In this document: one piece after another, positions 42,613-57,921 of the stretch
Position numbering within the stretch: the stretch's first letter is position 1
Layout of the letters: every line of letters starts with the position of its first letter
Assembly (NCBI RefSeq): GCF_031769215.1
Contig: NW_026781965.1
Span: 248,001-312,000 of the forward strand
Direction of reading: 5' to 3'
Length of the DNA: 64,000 nt
DNA from: Ylistrum balloti
Taxonomy: Eukaryota
Notes under the pieces: generated by a model
Database searches by the model: none
The model's input: only the letters and a program-made list of their open reading frames with translations
What the model was told of the DNA's origin: nothing
Made by a program: the position numbers and the translations under genes

Positions 42613-45165
42613 ATTGTGTGTACACTATAATGACCAGTTATACCAGGATTACTGATTGTGTGTACACCATAATGACCAGTTATACCAGGATTACTGATTG
42701 TGTGTACACTATAATGACCAGTTATACCAGGACTACTGATTGTGTGTACACTATAATGACCAGTTATACCAGGACTACTGATTGTGTGTACACTATAATG
42801 ACCAGTTATACCAGGACTACTGATTGTGTGTACACTATAATGACCAGTTATACCAGGACTACTGATTGTGTGTACACTATAATGACCAGTTATACCAGGA
42901 CTACTGATTGTGTGTACACTATAATGACCAGTTATACCAGGATTACTGATTGTGTGTACAATATAATGACCACTGGTTGTGTGTTATACCAGGATTACTG
43001 ATTGTGTGTACACTATAATGACCAGTTATACCAGGATTACTGATTGTGTGTACACTATAATGACCAGGACTACTGATTGTGTGTACACTATAATGACCAG
43101 TTATACCAGGACTACTGATTGTGTGTACACTATAATGACCAGTTATACCAGGACTACTGATTGTGTGTACACTATAATGACCAGTTATACCAGGACTACT
43201 GATTGTGTGTACACTATAATGACCAGTTATACCAGGACTACTGATTGTGTGTACACTATAATGACCAGTTATACCAGGACTACTGATTGTGTGTACACTA
43301 TAATGACCAGTTATACCAGGACTACTGATTGTGTGTACACTATAATGACCAGTTATACCAGGACTACTGATTGTGTGTACACTATAATGACCAGTTATAC
43401 CAGGACTACTGATTGTGTGTACACTATAATGACCAGGATTACTGATTGTGTGTACACTATAATGACCAGTTATACCAGGACTACTGATTGTGTGTACACT
43501 ATAATGACCAGTTATACCAGGATTACTGATTGTGTGTACACTATAATGACCAGTTATACCAGGATTACTGATTGTGTGTACACTATAATGACCAGTTATA
43601 CCAGGATTACTGATTGTGTGTACACTATAATGACCAGTTATACCAGGACTACTGATTGTGTGTACACTATAATGACCAGGATTACTGATTGTGTGTACAC
43701 TATAATGACCAGTTATACCAGGACTACTGATTGTGTGTACACTATAATGACCAGTTATACCAGGATTACTGATTGTGTGTACACTATAATGACCAGTTAT
43801 ACCAGGATTACTGATTGTGTGTACACTATAATGACCAGTTATACCAGGATTACTGATTGTGTGTACACTATAATGACCAGTTATACCAGGATTACTGATT
43901 GTGTGTACACTATAATGACCAGGACTACTGATTGTGTGTACACTATAATAACCAGGATTACTGATTGTGTGTACACTATAATGACCAGTTATACCAGGAT
44001 TACTGATTGTGTGTACACTATAATGACCAGGATTACTGATTGTGTGTACACTATAATGACCAGGATTACTGATTGTGTGTACACTATAATGACCAGGACT
44101 ACTGATTGTGTGTACACTATAATGACCAGTTATACCAGGATTACTGATTGTGTGTACACTATAATGACCAGTTATACCAGGATTACTGATTGTGTGTACA
44201 CTATAATAACCAGGATTACTGATTGTGTGTACACTATAATGACCAGGACTACTGATTGTGTGTACACTATAATAACCAGGATTACTGATTGTGTGTACAC
44301 TATAATGACCAGGACTACTGATTGTGTGTACACTATAATAACCAGGATTACTGATTGTGTGTACACTATAATGACCAGGATTACTGATTGTGTGTACACT
44401 ATAATGACCAGTTATACCAGGATTACTGATTGTGTGTACACTATAATGACCAGTTATACCAGGATTACTGATTGTGTGTACACTATAATGACCAGGATTA
44501 CTGATTGTGTGTACACTATAATAACCAGGATTACTGATTGTGTGTACACTATAATGACCAGTTATACCAGGATTACTGATTGTGTGTACACTATAATGAC
44601 CAGGATTACTGATTGTGTGTACACTATAATGACCAGGACTACTGATTGTGTGTACACTATAATGACCAGTTATACCAGGATTACTGATTGTGTGTACACT
44701 ATAATGACCAGTTATACCAGGATTACTGATTGTGTGTACACTATAATGACCAGGATTACTGATTGTGTGTACACTATAATGACCAGTTATACCAGGATTA
44801 CTGATTGTGTGTACACTATAATGACCAGTTATACCAGGACTACTGATTGTGTGTACACTATAATGACCAGTTATACCAGGACTACTGATTGTGTGTACAC
44901 TATAATGACCAGTTATACCAGGATTACTGATTGTGTGTACACTATAATGACCAGGATTACTGATTGTGTGTACACTATAATGACCAGGATTACTGATTGT
45001 GTGTACACTATAATGACCAGGATTACTGATTGTGTGTACACTATAATGACCAGTTATACCAGGATTACCTATTGTGTGTACACTATACTGACCAATTATA
45101 CCACAATTACTGATTGTTTGTACACTATACTGACCAATTATACCACAATTACTGATTGTGTATAG
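42613..45165. repeat. Minisatellite of interspersed 42 bp and 33 bp units (~65 units)
   Basis: tgattgtgtgtacactataatgaccag[ttataccag]ga(t/c)tac. Confidence 0.97.
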
Positions 45166-45593
45166 TGATGACAAAGGTCATACTAGGACAACTGATTGTA
45201 TTATCAAAAGTGACAACAAAAACGCAAAAAAACATGATGTTTTCTTTTTAATATTCCCGTAACACAAGACACCTCACACCAACAAAGCTGTGTAATAAAT
45301 AAATATATAAATAAATATTTATGATCTAGTTATGTTTGAGCAAATAGTGTGAGTCTAGAGGAGACTACAGACTAATGATACACTTAAGAACATTGCTGGC
45401 AGAAGGAACTGACAACCAAAATACTGTTAACTTGTCATTAAAAATGACAATATCTATATCACAGTTACTGAGCAAATAAATAACAAAACTAATTATATCA
45501 CTACTTAAAAAACTGTAAACAGTATTGTATACTGATTTCATGAAATCCTTTGAGATTCTAAGTTACAGGACAGCACCAAACATATTTCCTCCC

Positions 45594-45759
45594 TCACATT
45601 ATTACCTTTTCTGCATCACCTTGCTGTGCCTGACAACAATTTTTTTCTAGAACCTCCCTCCCATAGTTAGTACTTAAACCCTCGCAGAGGTCCCTCACAC
45701 ACTTTGTAGATTTCCTAACCTTATTACTAAAACTATTGCACCACAACTTTTCAAGTGGG
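45594..45759 (-). CDS. Weak candidate exon H
   Basis: Acceptor atctcttttgag|C (rare GAG type), phase 2; reads PLEKLWCNSFSNKVRKSTKCVRDLCEG...QAQQGDAEKVIM*. An internal AAG|gtaata donor means it could instead be an internal exon. Confidence 0.3.
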
Positions 45760-45959
45760 CTCAAAAGAGATTTAAAGTTTAAATAATGAAAATTTGAAAT
45801 AAATAAATAATGATAATAAAAAAAACTAATCATTATTAATACTAGTGATAAACATTTAAACCAGTATGACATATATATAGCCGAAAAATTGTTTGACATC
45901 TAATGATATAAATCTAGAAGAGTCTTTCCCGTTGGTTTTCTGCCTTCCTATACTTTCTC

Positions 45960-46122
45960 TCAGGTTCCTTCACTCTCGACATCACCAAAACATGTAAACA
46001 TGATAACTGATAAAAAAAAGTAATTGAATAACAAAGCAAGAATGCCACCAAAATATTGGATACTTAAACACAAAATGTGCAGGTGTATAAATAGCATTAG
46101 CTTTCGATATATATTTGTGAAA
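45960..46122 (-). CDS. Weak candidate alternative terminal exon G (hydrophobic tail)
   Basis: Strong acceptor tgtgtttctgttttatag|T, phase 2; reads FTNIYRKLMLFIHLHILCLSIQYFGGILALLFNYFFLSVIMFTCFGDVESEGT*. Confidence 0.3.
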
Positions 46123-46375
46123 CTATAAAACAGAAACACAACAGCAAGTGACAGCATATACCTTAATACTGATAAAACATGGGAATACAGTGAGTTGAAC
46201 AGGGTTTTTTTTTTTTTTGTGTAAATGTAGAAAAAGTGACAAATCTTTTCGGTTCATCTGTGATAATTTGAAAATGAGAATAAAAGCTCTGCTCTAATAC
46301 TGTATAAAAAGTAGGCAAGATTTGTTTGTTTTGTGGTGCCTATATCTCTATGGTCAACAAATTGTCTGATGAAGC

Positions 46376-46577
46376 CTATCTCTTTGGGGACAGCACACGG
46401 ACTTGCTGTAAGTCTTGGAAGCTGGTTGGTTTGCCAGTGGTGGAGAGGGGAGTGACCAATCCTATGTGGAACAGCTGTCGGCGCAGGTTGTGCCAGGTGC
46501 TGTCTAACAGAGGGCCGTTACGACTGTGATCATACTGCCTTTTGTCTCTTTCTGTCCCCATCCAATTGCTCTTATTC
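46376..46577 (-). CDS. Candidate alternative terminal exon F
   Basis: Acceptor aaaccacatacag|G, phase 2; GC-richer, coding-like sequence reading NKSNWMGTERDKRQYDHSRNGPLLDSTWHNLRRQLFHIGLV...FQDLQQVRVLSPKR*. Confidence 0.55.
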
Positions 46578-46627
46578 CTGTATGTGGTTTCAAAAGTTCA
46601 TAATTGAATTTACCACGTTTCTTCTAT

Positions 46628-46820
46628 TCATGCTAACTGCATGTCTAATTTAATGCAATATGCTGAGAATTCTAAAACAACAGATGATTTGGACATGCTT
46701 AAATATAACGGATTAGTATATAACCAGAACAAACATATTAGTAAAAAGGAGGTAATGCTTATGAGATACAAAAATATGGTATGGACATTTCTAGGGGTTT
46801 TTTCCTTCATATGCTTAAAC
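46628..46820 (-). CDS. Weak candidate alternative terminal exon E (hydrophobic tail)
   Basis: Acceptor tatttttatgtatcatccag|G, phase 2; 64 open codons, FKHMKEKTPRNVHTIFLYLISITSFLLICLFWLY...DMQLA*. It lacks the shared motif. Confidence 0.3.
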
Positions 46821-46937
46821 CTGGATGATACATAAAAATATCAACAACAAAAACATGTATATATATTTTTTGGTTTTTAAACTTAAATAAGTGACCGATT
46901 TCCATCATTTCAAGGCATTTCCTTGACAGCAATAACC

Positions 46938-47097
46938 CTAGACTTTGAAGTGTGGTTTTCGAGGAGGAAGTTCTCTTTGAAGTGATTTGTTAAGATAGCC
47001 TTGAGGATGTAGTAATGGGTAAACTTTATCCTCGGGATTGTTGTCGGCTTTCCTATGATAAATTCTGTGCATTGTAGGTTCCAACATATCACCAGAA
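46938..47097 (-). CDS. Candidate alternative terminal exon D
   Basis: Acceptor gtatgtgtttcag|T, phase 2; reads SGDMLEPTMHRIYHRKADNNPEDKVYPLLHPQGYLNKSLQRELPPRKPHFKV*. Confidence 0.6.
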
Positions 47098-47320
47098 CTG
47101 AAACACATACCGGTAATCTACGGTGAGTTTCAAAGAGAAGGTTAAGTTATAATTTTCTACTCTAAACAACAAGCTGAAAGTACAAGCGCATTTATTTCAA
47201 TTGCAACAGACATTAAAACAGGAAAACGAACAAGAGGCAAAACAGTCACACTCCCCAACCAGCTTCCAACTGTACATATATTGCTGCTGTCTGTACTAGT
47301 TGCTGACAGCTTACTATACT

Positions 47321-47444
47321 TTAACTTAAGTGGAATATTTTGTATGTGTGCTCAATGATTCGATATCTATGTCCAATAATCAAACCTGACCAATTTACAG
47401 CTATTGATGGTAACATTGCAGAGCAGTGATCAACAATATACTCA
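47321..47444 (-). CDS. Candidate alternative terminal exon C
   Basis: Strong acceptor tttttttttcttcgatcag|T, phase 2; reads EYIVDHCSAMLPSIAVNWSGLIIGHRYRIIEHTYKIFHLS*. There is an AATAAA about 125 nt downstream (47191-47196). Confidence 0.5.
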
Positions 47445-47630
47445 CTGATCGAAGAAAAAAAAAATATTAGTAACACTCTGTGTATTCCCACAATTGCACA
47501 CAAACAATAGAAGACAATACTATTTTACAGATGTAGCACCCAATATGATATCACCATTTAATGGACCAACAAACCTCAGAGTATAAATAACGATTATAGA
47601 AACAAGAAAACAATAAACAAAAAAAGTCTA

Positions 47631-47808
47631 TTAAAATTCATAAGGATGTAAAATTTTGTAAACTTGATCCCTCTCTATGTTTAATTTGCGTTGTTTCCTT
47701 TTCTTTAGAGAATCAGATTTCTGTTCCTGAGAGTTAGCAAGCTTCCTTGTTGAAAATTCATGCAGGAAGTTGTTCGGAACTGCATTTGTGTCGTGAAAAG
47801 ATTTTTCC
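47631..47808 (-). CDS. Candidate alternative terminal exon B
   Basis: Strong acceptor tttctaccgtcttctttcag|G, phase 2; reads EKSFHDTNAVPNNFLHEF...KKRKQRKLNIERDQVYKILHPYEF*. Confidence 0.6.
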
Positions 47809-48026
47809 CTGAAAGAAGACGGTAGAAATTTCTTTGGATTTTCCTTGCAAACGAACAAAGGATACTTCAAAATTGTTTGGTAAACTATATCCACTTGAAC
47901 ACAGACATAGATTACAGCACATTGATAGATATAGAAACATCACAGATTCAAGGAAGATAGGCACACATGATTGATGATCTTGTACTGCCATGGATGAGAT
48001 ACACCAGAGATCCAAACACTGTTAAA

Positions 48027-48273
48027 TCACGGTGGAGTTTCCGATAAAACTTGCACATGAAATTCTCCATTAACTCGACGAGCAATATCGTATCTTTCTT
48101 GCATGGCATTCATTTTTCTATTAGTCCGGTTGCTGTCATTAGTGTAATCGCAGTTATCTTTTCCTGGATAAATCACAGGATAAGCCCTATCAACATGGGG
48201 TGCCATGTTTTCTCGATTTCGATAACGATTGTTAAAACCTTCTTTGTTGACTCGAAACATTTCAAGAACTGGC
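48027..48273 (-). CDS. Candidate terminal exon A of the uncharacterised gene (gives a 196 aa product)
   Basis: Acceptor tgtgtttacaaattgcag|G, phase 2; reads PVLEMFRVNKEG...HVDRAYPVIYPGKD...FHVQVLSETPP*. Confidence 0.7.
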
Positions 48274-49339
48274 CTGCAATTTGTAAACACAGAAAAAAAC
48301 CAATTAAAGCTTGACACTTGCCTTTACCAATACAGGTTAGTTGTTATTATTAAATATTATACAGACAAGCAACTGGTAATCACATCAAACCAATTGTTTA
48401 AGGGGCACACCATAACACTGCATAGTCTTCATGCTCACAAACGTTAGAAGCATGGTCAGCATTTCTAATATTTAATGTTAAAACCTGGTAAGTAAAGAAG
48501 TTAATAGTATAAAGGTTAACCCATGGGATCAGAATGTATATAACAATCCATAAATATACCCAAACCATTGGAAAAAAAACAACCTATTCCTTATGTGAAT
48601 TTCAAAGAAAACATTAGAATTCTTCTTGAAATGCTTTGAGTACCTTAGTAAATATCTTAGTGTGTATCTCATCCAATACAGTGAATTCCATCAACAAATC
48701 CTAATGCTAATAGATAGAACAATGAATTAAGTCTGAAGCAATATGTGTGCTATTTTCAGAGACATGAAATGAAGATAATTCTGAAAAATGGACAATTAAA
48801 AAAATGTATTAAAGTTTCATTTCAACAAAGATATATAATAGATCAATCAGACAACCACCATCAATGTTGTACTGCTTATATTGTTTATTTTAGGTAGCTT
48901 CTCTGTTGGTGCTGGAATAATTCTACAACCCGTCTTTACTTCAGTACAACAAACCCCTACAGATAAAGGAATGTTAGTGTAGAACTAGTCAAGCTGTGAT
49001 AGAAAGGATACAGTGGCTAATAAGTCATAGAAATGTATAATGATGACGTCATTGTGATTAATTAGTGATCCTGATGTAGACTTTATATCATTAGTGTCAC
49101 ATTGTGCACAAACTTATCGTCGGCCCTAAAATCATGAAATTGCACTAACGCTTACTTATTCATCTGTAGCCAACGATGACAAAAACTTAGTTTTAGAATT
49201 TCTTACTTCATGATTTTGATAGAAAAATTTGTTAACTGCCTACCTAGAAATGTCAGCCATAAGGTGTACTTGTAAAACAAATTGTGAGCAAACAACTACA
49301 ATAGGTACTCATCATGCTTCATGAAATTAGCTGAGAGAG

Positions 49340-50400
49340 GTCAAACTTCATACAAGGATATCGTAGAAGGAGCATAACAAACTTCATACAGGGATATTGT
49401 AAAAGGCATAACAAACTTCATACAGGGATATCATCAAAGGCATAACAAACTTCATACAGGGATATCGTAAAAGGCATAACAAACTTCATACAGGGATATC
49501 ATCAAAGGCATAACAAACTTCATACAGGGATATCATCAAAGGCATAACAAACTTCATACAGGGATATCATCAAAGGCATAACAAACTTCATACAGGGATA
49601 TCGTAAAAGGCATAACAAACTTCATACAGGGATATCATCAAAGGCATAACAAACTTCATACAGGGATATCTTAAAAGGAGCATAAAAAACTTCATACAGG
49701 GATATCATCAAAGGCATAACAAACTTCATACAGGGATATCTTAAAAGGAGCATAAAAAACTTCATACAGGGATATCGTAAAAGGCATAACAAACTTCATA
49801 CAGGGATATCATCAAAGGCATAACAAACTTCATACAGGGATATCTTAAAAGGAGCATAAAAAACTTCATACAGGGATATCATCAAAGGCATAACAAACTT
49901 CATACAGGGATATCTTAAAAGGAGCATAAAAAACTTCATACAGGGATATCGTAAAAGGAGCATAACAAACTTCATACAGGGATATCGTAAAGAGAGCATA
50001 ACAAACTTCATACAGGGATATTGTAAAAGGAGCATAACAAACTGCCTACAGGGATATCTTAAAAGGAGCATAACAAACTTCATACAGGGATATTGTAAAA
50101 GGAGCATAACAAACTGCCTACAGGGATATCTTAAAAGGAGCATAACAGACTTCATACAGGGATATCTTAAAAGGAGCATAACAAACTTCATACAGGGATA
50201 TTGTAAAAGGAGCATAACAAACTGCCTACAGGGATATCTTAAAAGGAGCATAACAGACTTCATACAGGGATATTGTAAAAGGAGCATAACAAACTGCCTA
50301 CAGGGATATCTTAAAAGGAGCATAACAGACTTCATACAGGGATATCTTAAAAGGAGCATAACAAACTTCATACAGGGATATTGTAAAAGGAGCATAAACT
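49340..50400. repeat. 30-32 bp tandem repeat (~33 copies) in the intron between the constant exons and the terminal-exon array
   Basis: cttcatacagggatatc(atc/gta/tta)aaagg(ag)cataacaaa, with a ctgcctacag variant. Confidence 0.95.
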
Positions 50401-50553
50401 TTACACAAGGATTTCATAACAGGAGCATAACTCCAAGAATAGTACAATTGAAACTGGAATGAAAAAGAAAATGCAGGTTCACAATTACCAATATTTATTG
50501 CTCCAGGCAATTGTCTGTCTTCAGACAGACAATCTGTTTCCAGTAAACCTCAC

Positions 50554-53500
50554 ATATCCTTGATAGAGGGGGTGTAATAATTCAGCAGGTAGCTACCATT
50601 TCTATCTCTACAAAAATCTCAATTTCTTGACTTTTTATCCTTGGTAATGATGTTTATATAAAGACTAAATGTTTGCGTAAAAAATTTTAAAAATCATATT
50701 TTTTGAAAAAAAAATTTCTGATATTTGCTCATGTAAATATTAAGAAACTGGCTTCATAAAGTCAAGAATACTTTTGTTTGAAAGTGAAAGAAACAGTGGT
50801 TGGTGGTTTGGTAGACATAAGATGAACAAGTGGCTTGAAATATGAAAGCAGAAAAACAGGGAGAAAATTACATGGTTGTTATATTACTTCTGTAAGTAGG
50901 CAGTCAGGCAGTAATTCAATTAAACCCTGTACAACTAAGCTCATTAAAACCACATACAACTAAGCTTTTCTACAAAGTCAAATAAACATAATGGTGTATT
51001 AGCTGCATAATTATATAAAGCACGTACATTATTTTCAGAATCCCGGGTACATTATTTTAAAAATTGGATCAACATGCAGGGGCAATGGGTCACAACCACT
51101 TTCCTTCAAGGATCTATATATAAAATTAGGATCATGAACCACTTCCTTGAAAACCACACCATCTTCTGGTTCGAGTGATTGCAGTGCCAACTTACTGCAT
51201 CTAAAAGAGTAACACAATCAAAAAAATCACTTTAGTAAAAATCCACAAAATCATTAATGGAAAAAAAATAATCTAGCTAAATCCTTCTAAAAAAGTTGAT
51301 GATGATGGGTTAAATGAATGATGAAAGGCAATGAAGCTACATCCATAGTTACTGTTCACTTAGCAAAGGTTAAATAAAAAGCAAGTTATCATAAGTTAAT
51401 CATGGATTATGTTATTTTTACCTTGATAGGAGGAAGGGAAGAATATTTAGCTCAGGTTTGGAAAAAGTATTATATATAATTCTTTATACAGTGTTACTTT
51501 TTTGTTAAGTGATGGATATTTCCCATAGAGCATTTGACTGGTGAAATCCTGATTAATTGAAAACCATGAATATGTTGTATCACTGTTAGCAAAATCAATT
51601 TACACCAAAATACAACATATGACCCACTTATGCAGGCAAGTTAATCACTAAGTACAAATGATGTTTTAAGGAAATCTGATCTTATTTTCATTTCCTGAAT
51701 ATATTCTATACTACAGTAATTTTTCCTGCTTAAAACTTACTGGTTCCCATTACGTTCTTACTGTCTATATTTGTTTTTGAATGGGTTGACTAGATACAAA
51801 ATGGATTTAGAATTTTCACATGCAGATTTTTCATCAAAAAGTTGAGTATCTTAATTCTGAATGGTTGAAAATCAAAGGACAATAGATGATAAAAATTTGT
51901 AACTGTAAAATTTAAACTCTGTATTTTTTATAAGTTAGACATCTTTTCGTTTTCCTTTTTAAAATAATCCATATTATTGAAATTAAAGAATAAAAATCAA
52001 GAAAGCTAAATCTTCTATCAAAGGCATTTTCAAATTCATTATTGGGAAGAGTGAAAAGTACATGGTTTCAAATATAGCAGATCTAGGTTACCAGGTTACA
52101 ATTAGTCAAAACAAAGAGTCAGTTTTCAGGTGATAATTTCTAGTTGCATTCTTTTTTGCTTCCATTTGATAACTGTCTTGTTAGGTATTTGATATTTGCT
52201 GATTTTGTAATCTGCTTATTGTTCATGTATTCATATTTGCCTTAATGCTATGTTCTTGTCAGCTGCTCAATTATCATTTCCATTAATTTCCAATTGCAGC
52301 ACAGCATACAGGATTCATAAGACATGTATATACAAAATACAATTCATCTGTGCTATACAAGATTGTGGAGAACACAACCAAAACACTTCTGACACGACAA
52401 TACGTTAGCAACACTCTCATAAACCTAATTGTTGGCACAGGAAGAGATTAATAGAATTTCAAGCATTACGTAGCAACATCCTTTTTGACAAAGCATATAC
52501 AGAATGGCACCTGTAAAAATACTGCTTGAGATTTAATATTCTTAATTTGATATACAAGATAATAGTCCAGGTAATCTGACAGGAAACTGCACAAAAATAT
52601 TCAGAGATAATTGTTCAATAAGATAAGCCTTTTGAGACAACTACGTGTTCTGGATACTCAAAATGTCCTAGAAATGTGTTGATGCAAATTGTTAGGGTGA
52701 CTGGACCCCCTGCAGCCATCTTGCATTCTCTCATTGCTATTTGTTAATTGATAATTGCTTGATTTTATACTTATCGGTCACCAATTGTTATCATTTTCTA
52801 AATGCTGTTTGCTTATTATGATATATTTGAAAAATACAATGTTATGTAAGTCAAATAACTGATGCATGATGTAAAGAATGAAATCTACAACTACCAGAAG
52901 AGTATAAACATATATACAGCATTTAGCAACTGAAATGAATAATTAGCATAATGGTGTGTATGGCAATATGAAATTCATCAGTGTATAAGTGCTGAATTCC
53001 AAATCCAGGTGTTGTACAGTGATAAAGGAACCAACTCTCTGATCGTTTTTAGTAAAGACTGGATTAGATATCATGTTTGTTAAAGCAAAATTGTGTCCTG
53101 AAAGTCATACAATACAAAATATGACAAATGTGAAATAATTATGTAGAATGGTCAGCTTTTCTTTTCCAATACAGCAATGTTGTAGATTCACTACAGCACC
53201 ATGGTTGCAGATTCAGCACTGTATTATTGTACACGATGAGTCACTGTATAGTAAAGTGTTTCACTGCACAGTGTAATTATAGAAAAAGAACTGTGGTCAA
53301 TATGATAAGCTTTTGATAAATGTGCAAGTAATGTGAAATTAGAAGATTCTTGAAAATTTTATGAGTGTAGGAATACACCATAATATATAAACAGTACAGC
53401 TGGTACAGAGGATGACTGATTGCCCCTGAAACAACTAGTGTATCAAATGAAATGAGTTATAGCTACTGTGCTATATATCACAACTTCATTTAACAACTTG

Positions 53501-55416
53501 TTGCTATCTACCCTTCCTCCACAAAACTGCTTTACTATCCATAAACCATTTATGGGAAGCACAACAGTTATATTTTAGATATTTGAACTTAGTGAGATGG
53601 TGAGTCTGCTGACAAGCTATCCTTTACTTGTCTGTATAACTCTGCTCAAAAGTACAAATGCAAACAATTAAAAAAAACAAAAACACTAACTACATAAATT
53701 GCTAAATCTATTCAATTCATGCTTGCATGCAGAATTAATACTATATATTACAAATCTGGCATGTAATTATCAATAATCAGAAAAGCCTGAACTGATAACA
53801 CATGACATAGTATGTATTCAACAAAAGAATGAGAAATAGTATCATTACATGTTTACATGAACATTCATTAAATGAAATAATTTGATAATCTTATTTACTT
53901 CCAAATCCTTTCAATTTTATTGCTAAAACCAAAGAGATATACATTATGGAGAGACAATTTCATAATCGACTTCAACACATTTAATTAATACCCACCTTTT
54001 TGTGTCAAAATTATCAGCCCCTGAAAACATTATAGCTGTTTTACTGCCTGTCAGGGTTGCATCCTGTTCACAACTTGAACTCTGGAGAAGACATAACATA
54101 TTGATGATAGGTAAAGAAATATGAAATTTGTTGCACTAAGAACCTACACCTACATCTTTGACAAGATCAAAAGGCAAACTGTTAGCATTTCAGTTCAGTT
54201 GAATTTTGGCTGTGCTATTAACATTAAATTGTACAACTCGGAACTCTTGTACAAATATTGACAAATGTGTTCATTTAAAAAAAGAGGTTGTCTAAAGTTA
54301 ACAAATTATTTTAATTGTATGTTGTTAAGGTATAAAAATTGTGTATTGTTATGGCTACTAGTGTCAATCTGATATGATCCAATGATTCAAAAGTGTCACT
54401 GCTATACATGGCCAGTTATTTTCGACAATCAACAAGTAAAAACTAATGGATTTATCAATCACTTCAATAAGAGTTACAGGAATTGGATGTTCTATGTGTG
54501 AAATATTGACTTTACAGAGTACAGAATGTGTTACTGGAGTCAAGCAGTGAGTGTTTGACTAGAGACTGAAGGGATGCTAGTTTTACCTCAACCAGTGGTA
54601 GGGTGTTTTTAATTACTCCTTCCTATTACAGATAGAAGCTATTGAAAATTGAAATGCTTCCTTAGAGATAATGAACCATGCCTGCTGCTTTCTTCTGGGA
54701 AAGGAGTGAGTAGTGTAGAAGTTGAGAGTACAGGTCACATGGTTAGCCTTCGCTAATGGGAATTTGCATTTTGTCAATTGATAGAGTGTCTGGCTAGAGA
54801 CTAAAGGGTCACTAGTTCAAATATAGTTCATATAGGAAAGGCACTAGATTTTGAATATTGGTGTACATAATATCATGATACGGTGTTGTATATAACGGTA
54901 CCAAACTTTGAAATGCTGTTGTTTGGCCGATTTATTATCCGAAATTAAAGTGCCAACTGTGGTAAGGCATATGTTAAAAGTTTCTTGCCGTGTAAACCTC
55001 TAATATGTTTGGAGTAATATGATTCCTGTTACGTGTCTCTCATTAGGACTATTTTGTTAGTATGCTCGCTATATTCATGCCTAATCTCTTCATGGATTAC
55101 ATTCATATTTCACTATGATCTAGAGCCTCCTGTGATATACAACATATTAAAAAATAAACCCATTTAACTAGATGATGACATCTTATTATTAATAGAATGT
55201 CAAACTGCTTCTGAGTATTGACATGACAGCACTGGATACCGCTCTTTTAACAGTTTAAATGATCCGAACAAGTTTTACGGTTTGACATGACAGCTGAGAG
55301 TAGACTTCCCTTCATACCTGTGACTGTTTTGCCAACAGCCTTTTAAGAGCTTCTTGTTTCTTTTCCAAATTTGCCTGACGCCTCCGTGCCTCTTGATGGA
55401 AAGCACACTCAGACAT
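50554..55416 (-). CDS. Uncharacterised protein, constant N-terminal region (4 coding exons, 344 nt, ends in phase 2)
   Basis: Exons 55318-55416 (MSECAFHQEARRRQANLEKKQEALKRLLAKQSQ; CAG|gtatga), 52470-52510 (VPFCICFVKKDVAT), 51051-51200 (CSKLALQSLEPEDGVVFKEVVHDPNFIYRSLKESGCDPLPLHVDPIFKI) and 50554-50607 (DRNGSYLLNYYTPSIKD; AT|gtgagg). All have GT-AG boundaries and the phases chain 0-2-2-2 without stops. I do not recognise the family. Confidence 0.7.
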
Positions 55417-55479
55417 GGCTTCTTAGATCAGTTGGAACTTGTTATTCCTGTGATCTTGAACTACCTTCCTGAATAGCGT

Positions 55480-55910
55480 TTTCTGTAACTATGAGTAACA
55501 CGCATGGGCAGTGTAAACCGGAAGCTAGAATTTATCGATGATACTTTTTAAGAAAATAATTAAAAACCATATTTTTTTCTTTTCCTTATTGAAAAAATAT
55601 TTTTTTGTTTGGCTTCGGTAATTTCATAGAGAATTTTTGAGATAAAACCAATATCATTTTTAAATGTGATCTAAGCGACGCGATTTGTATTTGGGGTCTT
55701 TTTTCTCTGATACATGGGTTCCCCGTCGAATGCGCTAAAATTGGCGTAAATTCAGACCACTTCTGCGCAACTGCATGTGCCAGAACAAATTTTCTACGAA
55801 GAAATTCATCAACTCTTCACCTATCTTAGACGCCCTTATTAAAACATTCTAATGTATTTATGAGGATAGCACACCTAGAAATCGTATTTCATAATTTTTG
55901 AGGTGAGTAT
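55480..55910. promoter_or_regulatory. Bidirectional promoter region, uncharacterised gene / G3BP, with probable non-coding first exons
   Basis: CpG-rich, with CCGGAAG near 55517 and TGCGCA..TGCATGTGC near 55764. The plus-strand donor GAG|gtgagt at 55902 and the acceptor at 57900 bracket a G3BP 5'UTR intron. There is a minus-strand acceptor near 55470. Confidence 0.55.
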
Positions 55911-57921
55911 TTGTCAAAGAAACTGTATTTTATCAGATTGAATGACGGTACCGGGTTACCTCGTGTATCGTGGTGTATCGTGTCTTCCGTGTGTTTTACA
56001 GACTCATTGTTAGAAAACTGTTCTTGTTGTAAATCTAAATTGCATGTATATTGTGTTATATTGTTTAATCATACATCATAATTCAAAAATACTAACCATT
56101 CTCTTGTAAATGTGACTGAATATACATTGCATGACCTATCACGTGGCTCTGTAATTTGATAATGCAGGCCACAAACCGAAAGGCCGAGAAAAACACGATT
56201 TGAACATGTTCTCACCGAAATGTTTTTGCAAATATGGCGTTTATCATATCATTAAATGTCATTTTGTTTCTTCTTTCTGAAGTTTTCATGAAAAAACATC
56301 GTTTATGTATTTCAGGTTTGGGATTTCCACATGGTATTATTTTCCAAATTTGGAATGTATGCAGATCAGTAATTAGTTGAATAGTTCTGCGATCAATAGA
56401 AGTTTTCACGACTTTCAAGTCAGAAATACTATCTGATTTTAAATCGCCAGTATTTATATTGTACATTTGAAGCCGAAATTGTATACATTTGGTCAGTGTT
56501 ACTGGAGATTATTTTTATCTTAATGGTAATAATCTTTGTCTGGTATAAATGGCTTGCAGAATCGTGTTGTATTGCTTATACCTCCAGAAATTTACACTGT
56601 GTGAAAGAAATCCGGGAAGTGGTTGAGTTTATTTTTGTAAATAGATACAATTGCTATGACTTGCATAAACTAGGCATATAACTGTATTTATTGCTTATGA
56701 TAGTGAATGAAATGTTCACTAGAGCTGAAACAAATAGCAGATTCTGGCATTTAAATATTCCTTTAATATTTCTGATAGAGATGCCAACAATAAGAACATG
56801 TACTTATTTTTCAGAAACTCCACTAGATACCAGCAGTTATTTGAGTAATTAATATATCTTTTACATATAAATGTAAAACAAATATTATTTAAAGTTTCAG
56901 GTTTAATTTTAATGAAATATACCTTCAGTTAGAATAACGAAACACATAAAAGTCATCTGAAGAGCTGGTAGTAAAACAATATTTTGAGTTGGATCATGTG
57001 GTGAGATGTTACCTTCTTGTCTTAGTTTTGTCATCTGACAAGTGAAGACTGAACAATTTGTTTACAAGTCTGGAAAATGTTCAACACATAGATTCCTAAA
57101 TCAGAGCTAATCCCCATCTATTTACGTATTGACTTTAATAACGTTACCAAAATGGCTTGTGTAGTAGATTTTCATAAGTCAATTGGGTACTTGTAATCAA
57201 CTTTGTTACACAGAAACATTTTCCTCATTCTGATGTTCAATACTTCAATACAGAATGTTAGTCTGGTGATGACTAGTTATTTTTATACAGTAAAACTGCT
57301 TAGTGTAGCTTATTTTCAGTTCCAGATCTCTCTGAATTCAGTTTGAAATATTCCCAAATCCATTTGGTTATACATGCGATAAAGTAGATACATTATACCA
57401 AATATTAGAATGTGGTTTTGTTAATATAATGTTCAGGAAAGAGGTATTCGTTCCTGAAAATTCGAAGGTCTGTTTCAACTCCCAATGTTGATAAAAATTT
57501 ATGTTGATGGTTACAAATTCATCAATAACTACAGCATGGTGCTTTATCATAATATGAGGAATCTGAGTCACTGCAATGTTTATGCTTCCGGGTTTGAAAT
57601 AGCATGATACGACTGTGATTATTGCCGTTCAACTAGGCTAAATACTTCGTTAATGATTTCTTATCGTGATGAGATCATTTGAACTTTTCAGAAACAGAAA
57701 CATAAGATCATTAAATTGAAAATCCAATCGCCAAGTGGGCAAATGAGGTAACAACATTCAGTAGCCCAGCTAATGATTTGGTCGCATTGGGCGACTGGGC
57801 GACCGTTAATCTGCACCCCTGAACTAAAACATTATTTTTTCTGATTATTTGATGATAAATCTTGGATTGAGTATTCTAGAAATAACATTTATTTTTACAG
57901 ATTACTTGATAAAGTAAAGTC

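Follow-up and report, generated by a model that had tools for sequence, protein, structure and literature searches.

A conserved tandem array of five alternative C-terminal tails in a small uncharacterized scallop gene, with a predicted docking/selector-like RNA duplex

A few insect genes are well known for their arrays of alternative C-termini, and the way in which long-range RNA pairing chooses among variable exons has been elucidated mostly in arthropods. In Drosophila, the 3' variable regions of PGRP-LC, CG42235 and Pip are described as governed by competing RNA pairings (Pan et al., RNA 2018, PMC6191721): docking-selector pairing activates the nearby 3' splice site, and which variant is made depends on the competing pairings. 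Drosophila mod(mdg4) and lola are also reported to have arrays of alternative C-terminal exons (PMC13490949). Here we describe a gene of the scallop Ylistrum balloti, LOC132543894 in RefSeq, annotated 'uncharacterized protein'. It lies on the minus strand of a stretch of 64,000 nucleotides (contig NW_026781965.1, positions 248,001 to 312,000), called the window below. All coordinates of gene features refer to the minus strand of the window. An earlier note, made from the sequence alone, had proposed that one N-terminal module is joined here to a tandem array of alternative C-terminal tails. The central idea of this proposal was confirmed, as two RefSeq proteins equal splices of the window and the relatives carry five such tails; its details were right only in part.

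We found the gene by translating a candidate exon (48272-48030), which matched scallop and oyster entries named 'uncharacterized protein isoform X1' in protein collections. The full Argopecten protein was used as query and returned isoforms X1-X6 of Argopecten irradians, X1-X5 of Pecten maximus and X1-X4 of Mizuhopecten yessoensis. Within each scallop species the first 61-62 residues are common to the isoforms, which diverge only afterwards. The exons were placed by tblastn of the scallop isoforms on the window, followed by a check of the splice model; the relatives' RefSeq isoforms that carry the tails aligned to the window at 80-96% identity. Two constant exons, encoding approximately 61 residues, are followed by five tails, which we designate E0, A, B, D and F. 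Joining the exon 2 donor (53996) to each of the five acceptors yields in-frame products, the lengths of which are given in Table 1. The splice of exon 1, exon 2 and E0 was identical, residue for residue, to XP_060063418/19 (isoform X3 of LOC132543894, labelled P0069 by us), and the splice of exon 1, exon 2 and A to XP_060063420 (isoform X4, labelled P0105). A 128-aa product is also on record for the Ylistrum balloti genome, with a range that ends exactly at the F stop, and all five tail types occur as RefSeq isoforms in relatives. One donor therefore serves several acceptors, each of which reaches its own stop. The isoforms as such are already listed by automatic annotation; a literature search on six LOC/UniProt identifiers of the family returned no paper naming the gene.

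The earlier note had listed eight acceptors behind a constant region thought to end at 51051 or 50554. Four of them (48273, 47808, 47097 and 46577) were exact, matching the RefSeq junctions here and in the three other scallops, and each opens a phase-2 frame with its own stop (codon numbers in Table 1). The remaining four (47444, 46820, 46122 and 45759) were not conserved as coding sequence. The constant region ends in fact at 53996, also in phase 2, and the 51200-51035 exon is itself terminal. Its reading frame continues past 51051 as far as a stop whose position is the same in four scallops, so that the exon counts among the tails. The array holds five tails and not up to eight, and the fifth (E0, acceptor 51200) was missing from the listed acceptors. 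The isoforms are 114-143 amino acids (aa) long, not 155-196 aa.

We compared the locus of Ylistrum balloti with those of M. yessoensis, P. maximus and A. irradians (L001-L003), that is, in four scallops. The block 48653-46028 aligned in one piece to two of the relatives (76-79% identity) and in two pieces to the third (77% and 71%); the introns of the gene are mostly unalignable among scallops. Identity in the four species was 0.94, 0.91, 0.91 and 0.93 for tails A, B, D and F, respectively, 0.61-0.77 for the spacers, and 0.50, 0.61 and 0.68 for the candidates at 47444, 46820 and 46122. Tails A, B, D and F remained in frame in all four scallops, with indels of just 9 and 3 nucleotides (nt), and variable sites were distributed over the first, second and third codon positions as 4/9/12 in A, 7/6/12 in B, 5/7/11 in D and 5/2/20 in F (21/24/55 in sum). 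The ratio of nonsynonymous to synonymous substitution rates (dN/dS) was below 1 in 24 of 24 pairwise comparisons of these tails, and was lowest for F (0.02-0.26). The acceptors of the tails, together with their pyrimidine tracts, were invariant among scallops. For E0, the acceptor, the frame and the position of the stop were kept in the four species (stop TGA; TAA in A. irradians). Conservation in relatives and dN/dS below 1, the tests put forward in the earlier note, therefore hold for A, B, D and F; they do not extend to 47444, 46820 and 46122, which are unconserved, or to 45759, which is unalignable.

Further, we used one sequencing run of Ylistrum balloti, which represents DNA, as its depth was flat (10.5) over exons, introns and spacers. 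None of the 17 single nucleotide polymorphisms of 45450-49396 fell in the tail coding sequence (787 nt), where 3.4 were expected. Over 45450-51350, the run and the window disagreed at approximately 0.4% of sites and in several small indels, none of them within the tail coding sequences. The candidates at 47444, 46820 and 46122 showed 50-68% identity and carried stops or frameshifts in other scallops, the one at 45759 lay in DNA without any interspecies alignment, and a micro-exon at 50610-50554 was 21-45% identical among scallops; all of these were rejected as exons.

The order exon 1-exon 2-E0-A-B-D-F was identical in the oyster Crassostrea virginica, the mussel Mytilus trossulus and the gastropod Haliotis rufescens, as determined by tblastn on the loci. 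In the nemertean Tubulanus we detected A-B-D-F in this order, with a weak E0/A-like match upstream of A, and in the brachiopod Lingula A-D-F, where isoform records end at the D and F stops. Oyster RefSeq/UniProt entries hold all five tail types. A is the ancestral tail, with orthologues in oysters, mussel, gastropods, nemertean and brachiopod. A profile search of 1.84 billion representative proteins returned only 68 family members, and the named ones belonged to molluscs, a nemertean, a brachiopod and an annelid. Given the dates at which these phyla diverged, the tails have each persisted for over half a billion years, and tails kept for that long must each do something. Two further observations concern single species. 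The model of the limpet Patella vulgata (196 aa, P0099) holds E0-like and A-like parts in one protein, so that E0 may be an internal exon in some lineages. In Crassostrea virginica the F segment (L004, approximately 16110) has an in-frame stop after TPL where other oysters have TPLYAGEG, and this species may make a shorter F tail.

Some of the tails are related to each other. Alignment of A and E0 with hhalign gave a probability of 95% (E = 1.7e-8), which identifies them as exon duplicates; B and D (60%, E = 9e-5) are probably duplicates as well, and F is unrelated in sequence to the other tails. E0, A, B and D have the core motif D-x-x-[YF]-x-[VIL]-[ILM]-[YH]-P in common. The core [YF]-x-[VILM]-[ILMV]-[YH]-P occurs five times in the six frames of the window, and four of the five occurrences are in E0, A, B and D, with Asp three residues upstream. 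The order of the tails across phyla and their paralogy are newly described here. We judge the array to be real, ancient and under selection, and put the probability of our explanation of the locus as a whole, set out below, at roughly 0.85. It is the conservation that establishes the array as real, since sequence statistics by themselves were insufficient.

Table 1. Features of the tail gene and of its vicinity, in window coordinates.
Feature	Position	Strand	Remarks
Constant coding exon 1	55318-55416	minus	ATG at 55416; 33 codons; donor GTATGA; placed by tblastn of scallop isoforms
Constant coding exon 2	53996-54081	minus	ends AG/GTGGGT, phase 2; one donor serving all five tails
Conserved single-copy intron patch	53382-53738	minus	in intron 2; 74-76% identity with M. 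yessoensis and P. maximus; rest of the intron unalignable
Docking-like element	53381-53435	minus	561 nt downstream of the exon 2 donor; 36-nt core invariant in three aligned scallops
Tail E0	51035-51200	minus	54 codons + stop, ends ...HVDPIFKIMYPGF; 116-aa isoform; equals RefSeq X3
AATACA, candidate poly(A) signal of E0	50995-51000	minus	approximately 35 nt past the E0 stop; AATAAA at the same position in M. yessoensis
Candidate selector A2	48841-48882	minus	568 nt upstream of the A acceptor; second-best docking partner in three scallops, shared motif
Candidate selector A1, GCCCC[T/A][T/A]AAACA	48390-48411	minus	117 nt upstream of the A acceptor; -21 kcal/mol
Tail A	48027-48273	minus	81 codons + stop; 143-aa isoform; equals RefSeq X4
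Tail B	47631-47808	minus	58 codons + stop, ends ...DQVYKILHPYEF; 120-aa isoform; matches RefSeq isoforms X3 (M. yessoensis, P. maximus) and X5 (A. irradians)
ATTAAA	47557-47562	minus	kept in all four scallops; approximately 70 nt past the B stop, then a conserved GU-rich stretch
Selector-like element D	47232-47283	minus	135 nt upstream of the D acceptor; predicted duplex of approximately 40 bp with the docking-like element
Tail D	46938-47097	minus	52 codons + stop, ...DKVYPLLHPQGY...PRKPHFKV; 114-aa isoform; matches P. maximus isoform X5
Tail F	46376-46577	minus	66 codons + stop, begins NKSNWMGTERDKRQYDHSRNGPLL...; 128-aa isoform
Conserved non-coding element	46075-46195	minus	87-92% identity in four scallops; single copy; 180-300 nt past the F stop

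RNA evidence was obtained from assembled contigs of sequencing runs. The A isoform can be read unbroken from three Logan contigs, each of a separate oyster run, with introns 1 and 2 removed and E0 skipped. All three are colinear with the genome past the A stop through the B segment; one of them (L011) extends also to the start of D, and another (L010) through D to the first codons of F. This colinearity places B, D and the start of F in the 3' untranslated region (3'UTR) of the A form, which makes the tails alternative 3' splice sites in a nested arrangement, with poly(A) sites in common. The concern of the earlier note about missing poly(A) signals was apt, as the oyster transcripts hold the downstream tails unspliced behind A. 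Full spliced open reading frames (ORFs) ending in B, D or E0 were identified on Logan/ENA contigs of 0.6-2 kb, which we infer to be spliced RNA because the genomic span is several kb. The A junction was accordingly seen in oyster RNA contigs, and those of B, D and E0 were deduced from the short Logan/ENA contigs.

There is no canonical poly(A) signal between the A stop and the B acceptor, and the ATTAAA after B is the sole canonical signal kept in all four scallops. Judging by its position and conservation, it is probably the poly(A) site shared by the A and B forms, and the AATACA behind E0 is probably the signal of that tail. The tails are nested and not self-contained, and the terminal exons do not each have a poly(A) site of their own: E0 stands apart upstream as a terminal exon with a probable signal of its own, and A, B, D and F form one conserved 2.6-kb block. 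This nested 3'UTR arrangement is newly described here.

The conserved patch in the intron after exon 2 is closed by an invariant block of 36 nt, which forms the core of an element resembling a docking site (Table 1). This docking-like element is complementary to a conserved element upstream of tail D. When the docking core was slid along the downstream gene, the best predicted partner was the same in three scallops, namely the island of the D selector (-45 to -51 kcal/mol, z -5 to -7). The energy of the docking/D pair was -50.2 kcal/mol vs -30.1 ± 2.6 kcal/mol for dinucleotide-shuffled cores (60 trials, minimum -37.6; z -7.8), and the pair ranked first among 22,770 window pairs when intron 2 was compared, all against all, with everything downstream. 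The duplex was predicted to be 11 kcal/mol more stable in the sense RNA than in the antisense RNA (-52.1 vs -40.8 kcal/mol). Out of 33 core pairs 33, 33, 32 and 30 were kept in the four scallops, and six core pairs vary yet still pair in all four. The likeness to clustered variable exons, drawn already in the earlier note, is strengthened by this complementarity, and the docking/selector-like duplex in scallops is newly described here. Two other pairs of the all-against-all scan, 53545/46100 and 53570/47525, were absent in M. yessoensis and P. maximus and were treated as chance.

Two weaker candidate selectors lie upstream of A. A1 pairs with the docking element at its left part, where its target overlaps the bases to which the D selector pairs, and A2 overlaps them too. 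The A1 motif is kept in four scallops and is a perfect complement of 12-13 nt in P. maximus and A. irradians. No selector for E0, B or F was found in the scallop pairing scan. As a separate observation, a site in intron 2 of Haliotis rufescens (L005, 25032) pairs with 26521 (-36 kcal/mol) and 28671 (-35 kcal/mol), sites that lie 34 nt upstream of E0 and 323 nt upstream of D; these energies are within the background of the scan, and a lineage-specific docking/selector set is possible.

The protein itself offers little resemblance to known families. Pfam gave nothing above cut-off for any of the isoform types, and look-alikes in the ESM Atlas were only unnamed mollusc and rotifer clusters. The constant part is predicted to begin with a long helix. 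A search of the whole PDB with the oyster N-terminus returned a sole match, chain 8snb_1o (E = 5e-5, residues 1-33), and a profile match to this chain reached E = 0.0014 over residues 1-84. This chain has 142 aa and belongs to the doublet microtubule structure of sea urchin sperm, where it is deposited as 'Meiosis-specific nuclear structural protein 1' (entry 8SNB, PMC10973386). The two N-termini are nearly identical (M..QYHWEALRKQRVIDRR vs MAESAYHMEALRRQRVIDRK), the length of the chain is like that of the A isoform, and there is a weak match at G-x-x-N-x-Y-x-x-R-E; the chain is, by contrast, absent from the 68 family members found in 1.84 billion proteins. We regard homology to 8snb_1o as a lead suggested by these alignments and make no claim of membership. 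If the lead holds, each tail may provide a protein of the cilium or flagellum with a different short binding motif.

Taken together, the phase-2 donor at 53996 can be spliced to any one of five acceptors, each of which opens a different C-terminal frame with its own stop, and the tails are nested 3' splice sites that act together with alternative polyadenylation. The choice of tail could be explained as follows. If a transcript is cleaved at the conserved ATTAAA downstream of B, only E0, A or B would be left to it. Transcripts that read through would acquire the D selector, which could then pair with the docking element 561 nt past the donor. Such pairing would loop out approximately 6.1 kb, including E0, A, B and the poly(A) site, and bring the D and F acceptors near the donor, while the weaker selector-like elements upstream of A would compete for the same docking bases. 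We infer this mechanism, including the functional role of the pairing. In its widest form the reading joins three parts, namely an order of five tails fixed since the ancestor of molluscs, nemerteans and brachiopods, a microtubule-associated protein of approximately 140 aa in cilia or flagella, and a scallop duplex that sets A/B against D/F; as a whole it is speculative, and we think it rather unlikely that all three parts are correct. If it is true, this would be the first docking/selector system described in a mollusc, as far as our searches show, and different ciliated cell types (sperm, gill, larva) would equip one and the same microtubule anchor with different short binding tails.

Several points weigh against parts of this reading. 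The colinearity of the oyster contigs could in part reflect unspliced precursor RNA rather than mature 3'UTR, and the use of poly(A) sites is deduced throughout. That tails B and D are used in Ylistrum balloti is suggested by conservation and by the relatives. The RNA pairing is computed. Double compensatory changes in the docking/D duplex were absent among the four scallops, where all changes were one-sided (G-C to G-U, U-G to U-A), and the strong conservation of both arms leaves covariation little power in four such close species. The A2 energy (-34 kcal/mol; -33 to -38 kcal/mol in three scallops) falls within the range of the shuffled controls and is marginal, and A1 has one or two mismatches in Ylistrum balloti and M. 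yessoensis. The same scan in oyster, mussel and abalone gave no docking/selector outlier beyond background, and the pairing may be confined to scallops. For the protein, AlphaFold on the A isoform, run with nine sequences, gave a predicted local distance difference test score of 58, with only helix 2-36 fairly confident, and the confident match to 8snb_1o covers residues 1-33 only, the rest of that chain being coiled-coil-like.

We also considered other explanations of the array. The surrounding DNA is AT-rich (32-39% G+C), and the frames could be chance ORFs in a 3'UTR or in intergenic DNA, with just the 48273 exon real. The earlier note had held such open runs hard to explain by chance. This did not survive counting, as 10.6 ± 2.4 runs of at least 41 codons are expected per 2.7-kb strand and 19 were observed; four of the eight candidates are runs of this kind. 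Picking the best AG for each ORF, moreover, leaves the phase agreement that it reported nearly empty as an argument. B, D and F are nevertheless 91-93% identical in scallops, with the frame kept, a bias to the third codon position and dN/dS below 1. Oyster, mussel and abalone have their peptides in identical order, nemertean and brachiopod have part of them, and spliced transcripts and RefSeq isoforms carry these tails. Conservation, frame and the peptides across phyla already refute chance for B, D and F, and we give this explanation next to no probability. The gene model of the earlier note, in which a constant region running through 51051 and 50554 leads to 5-8 tails and to isoforms of 155-196 aa, draws on a phase-2 site at 51051 (AT/GTACCC) that would join A in frame, and the Patella vulgata model does unite E0-like and A-like parts. 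GTACCC is a weak donor by the splice-site consensus. Moreover, each tail follows immediately on exon 2, and E0 is read as far as its stop, in RefSeq proteins from this genome and from three scallops. The residues and the stop position past 51051 are conserved, and the 50610-50554 exon is poorly conserved among scallops; we find this model highly unlikely.

The same small chance is left, in our view, to the idea that B, D and F are kept mainly as a regulatory 3'UTR of the A form, their spliced forms being minor by-products without protein function. It would agree with the oyster contigs, in which the A stop is followed by unspliced B, D and the first codons of F, and with the alignment of 48653-46028 as one piece among scallops. 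Constraint on a UTR does not explain, however, why indels preserve the frame, why variable sites in F follow a 5/2/20 pattern, or why dN/dS is 0.02-0.26 there; peptide conservation moreover spans phyla where the DNA no longer aligns, and the acceptors with their pyrimidine tracts are invariant. Trans-splicing of tails made from their own promoters, as at Drosophila mod(mdg4), has even less to recommend it and seems to us very improbable. The architecture, common 5' exons and an array of variable 3' exons, is similar (PMC13490949), and RNA pairing is reported to aid trans-splicing in other systems (PMC9258826). All tails of the scallop gene nevertheless lie on the same strand, downstream and in order; the oyster contigs represent one continuous transcript over A, B and D, and spacers of 150-500 nt leave little space for promoters. 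Nothing demands trans-splicing. We therefore prefer the reading in which five selected tails are joined in cis to one constant module.

Some further elements were noted around the array. The conserved non-coding element downstream of F adjoins the end of the interspecies alignment and contains a conserved acceptor-like AG (46122), behind which the frame is unconserved; it is possibly the 3' end region of the gene. A scan of 45000-56500 against Rfam returned no match, so the G+C-rich F exon is not a known RNA family or one resembling short interspersed elements, and its codon-position pattern is that of coding sequence. In Argopecten, RefSeq isoform X4 joins a donor internal to E0 (window approximately 51100, after ...SLKE) to the B acceptor (47808) in another frame, which gives an unrelated tail; this junction is probably a splicing by-product. 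The stretch in question is flanked by two minisatellites. The one at 42613-45199 has a 42-nt unit in approximately 60 copies, and Pecten maximus has an array of the same unit at the homologous site (L002, 20408-21941), which makes the array itself old. The other (49342-50431; 36/34-nt unit, approximately 31 copies) lies in the intron between E0 and A and breaks the contigs of the DNA run. A G3BP gene (NTF2 and RRM domains) is arranged head-to-head with the tail gene, from approximately 57900 onwards on the plus strand. This layout recurs in scallops, oyster, abalone and nemertean, with coding starts 1.5-6 kb apart, and FLII lies downstream in the scallop M. yessoensis and in the mussel. The neighbourhood represents deep microsynteny and possibly a shared promoter region.

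In summary, the locus adds to the known cases a very small protein without a known domain, whose five tails stand in one order over bivalves and a gastropod and mostly so in a nemertean and a brachiopod. It is compact (approximately 9 kb in total, with a tail block of 2.6 kb), which makes it a handy model for the coupling of splice choice and polyadenylation, and the scallop duplex of approximately 40 bp is a clear point at which the mechanism can be tested. Compared with mod(mdg4) and lola, it is similar in that tandem duplication contributed to the variable exons, here to A/E0 and probably to B/D. It differs in that mod(mdg4) has more than 30 variants trans-spliced from independent promoters (PMC13490949) vs five colinear tails on one strand here, and the continuous oyster transcripts argue for cis-splicing. 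Unlike mod(mdg4) and lola, the scallop gene has no BTB or zinc-finger domain and no Pfam family, and its tail order is fixed across phyla. With Dscam1 exon 6 it may share long-range pairing between one docking element by a constant exon and elements by variable exons (PMC8791459, PMC12962786), and in both cases the pairing arms are conserved intron islands. The variable exons of Dscam1 are, however, internal and mutually exclusive, with a selector per variant, whereas here they are terminal, the strong candidate selector serves one tail only, and the tails exclude each other because one donor is shared. Close counterparts are also PGRP-LC, CG42235 and Pip. The scallop gene is unrelated to them, its pairing is computed only and undetected in oyster, mussel and abalone, candidate selectors were found for two of its five tails, and the tails are short motifs and not folded domains. 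Nevertheless, the Drosophila genes (PMC6191721) and the scallop gene both have a constant 5' part joined to one of several 3' cassettes, with complementary docking and selector elements in introns, and in the scallop gene the docking-like element is predicted to pair with the D selector while weaker elements upstream of A overlap the same bases.

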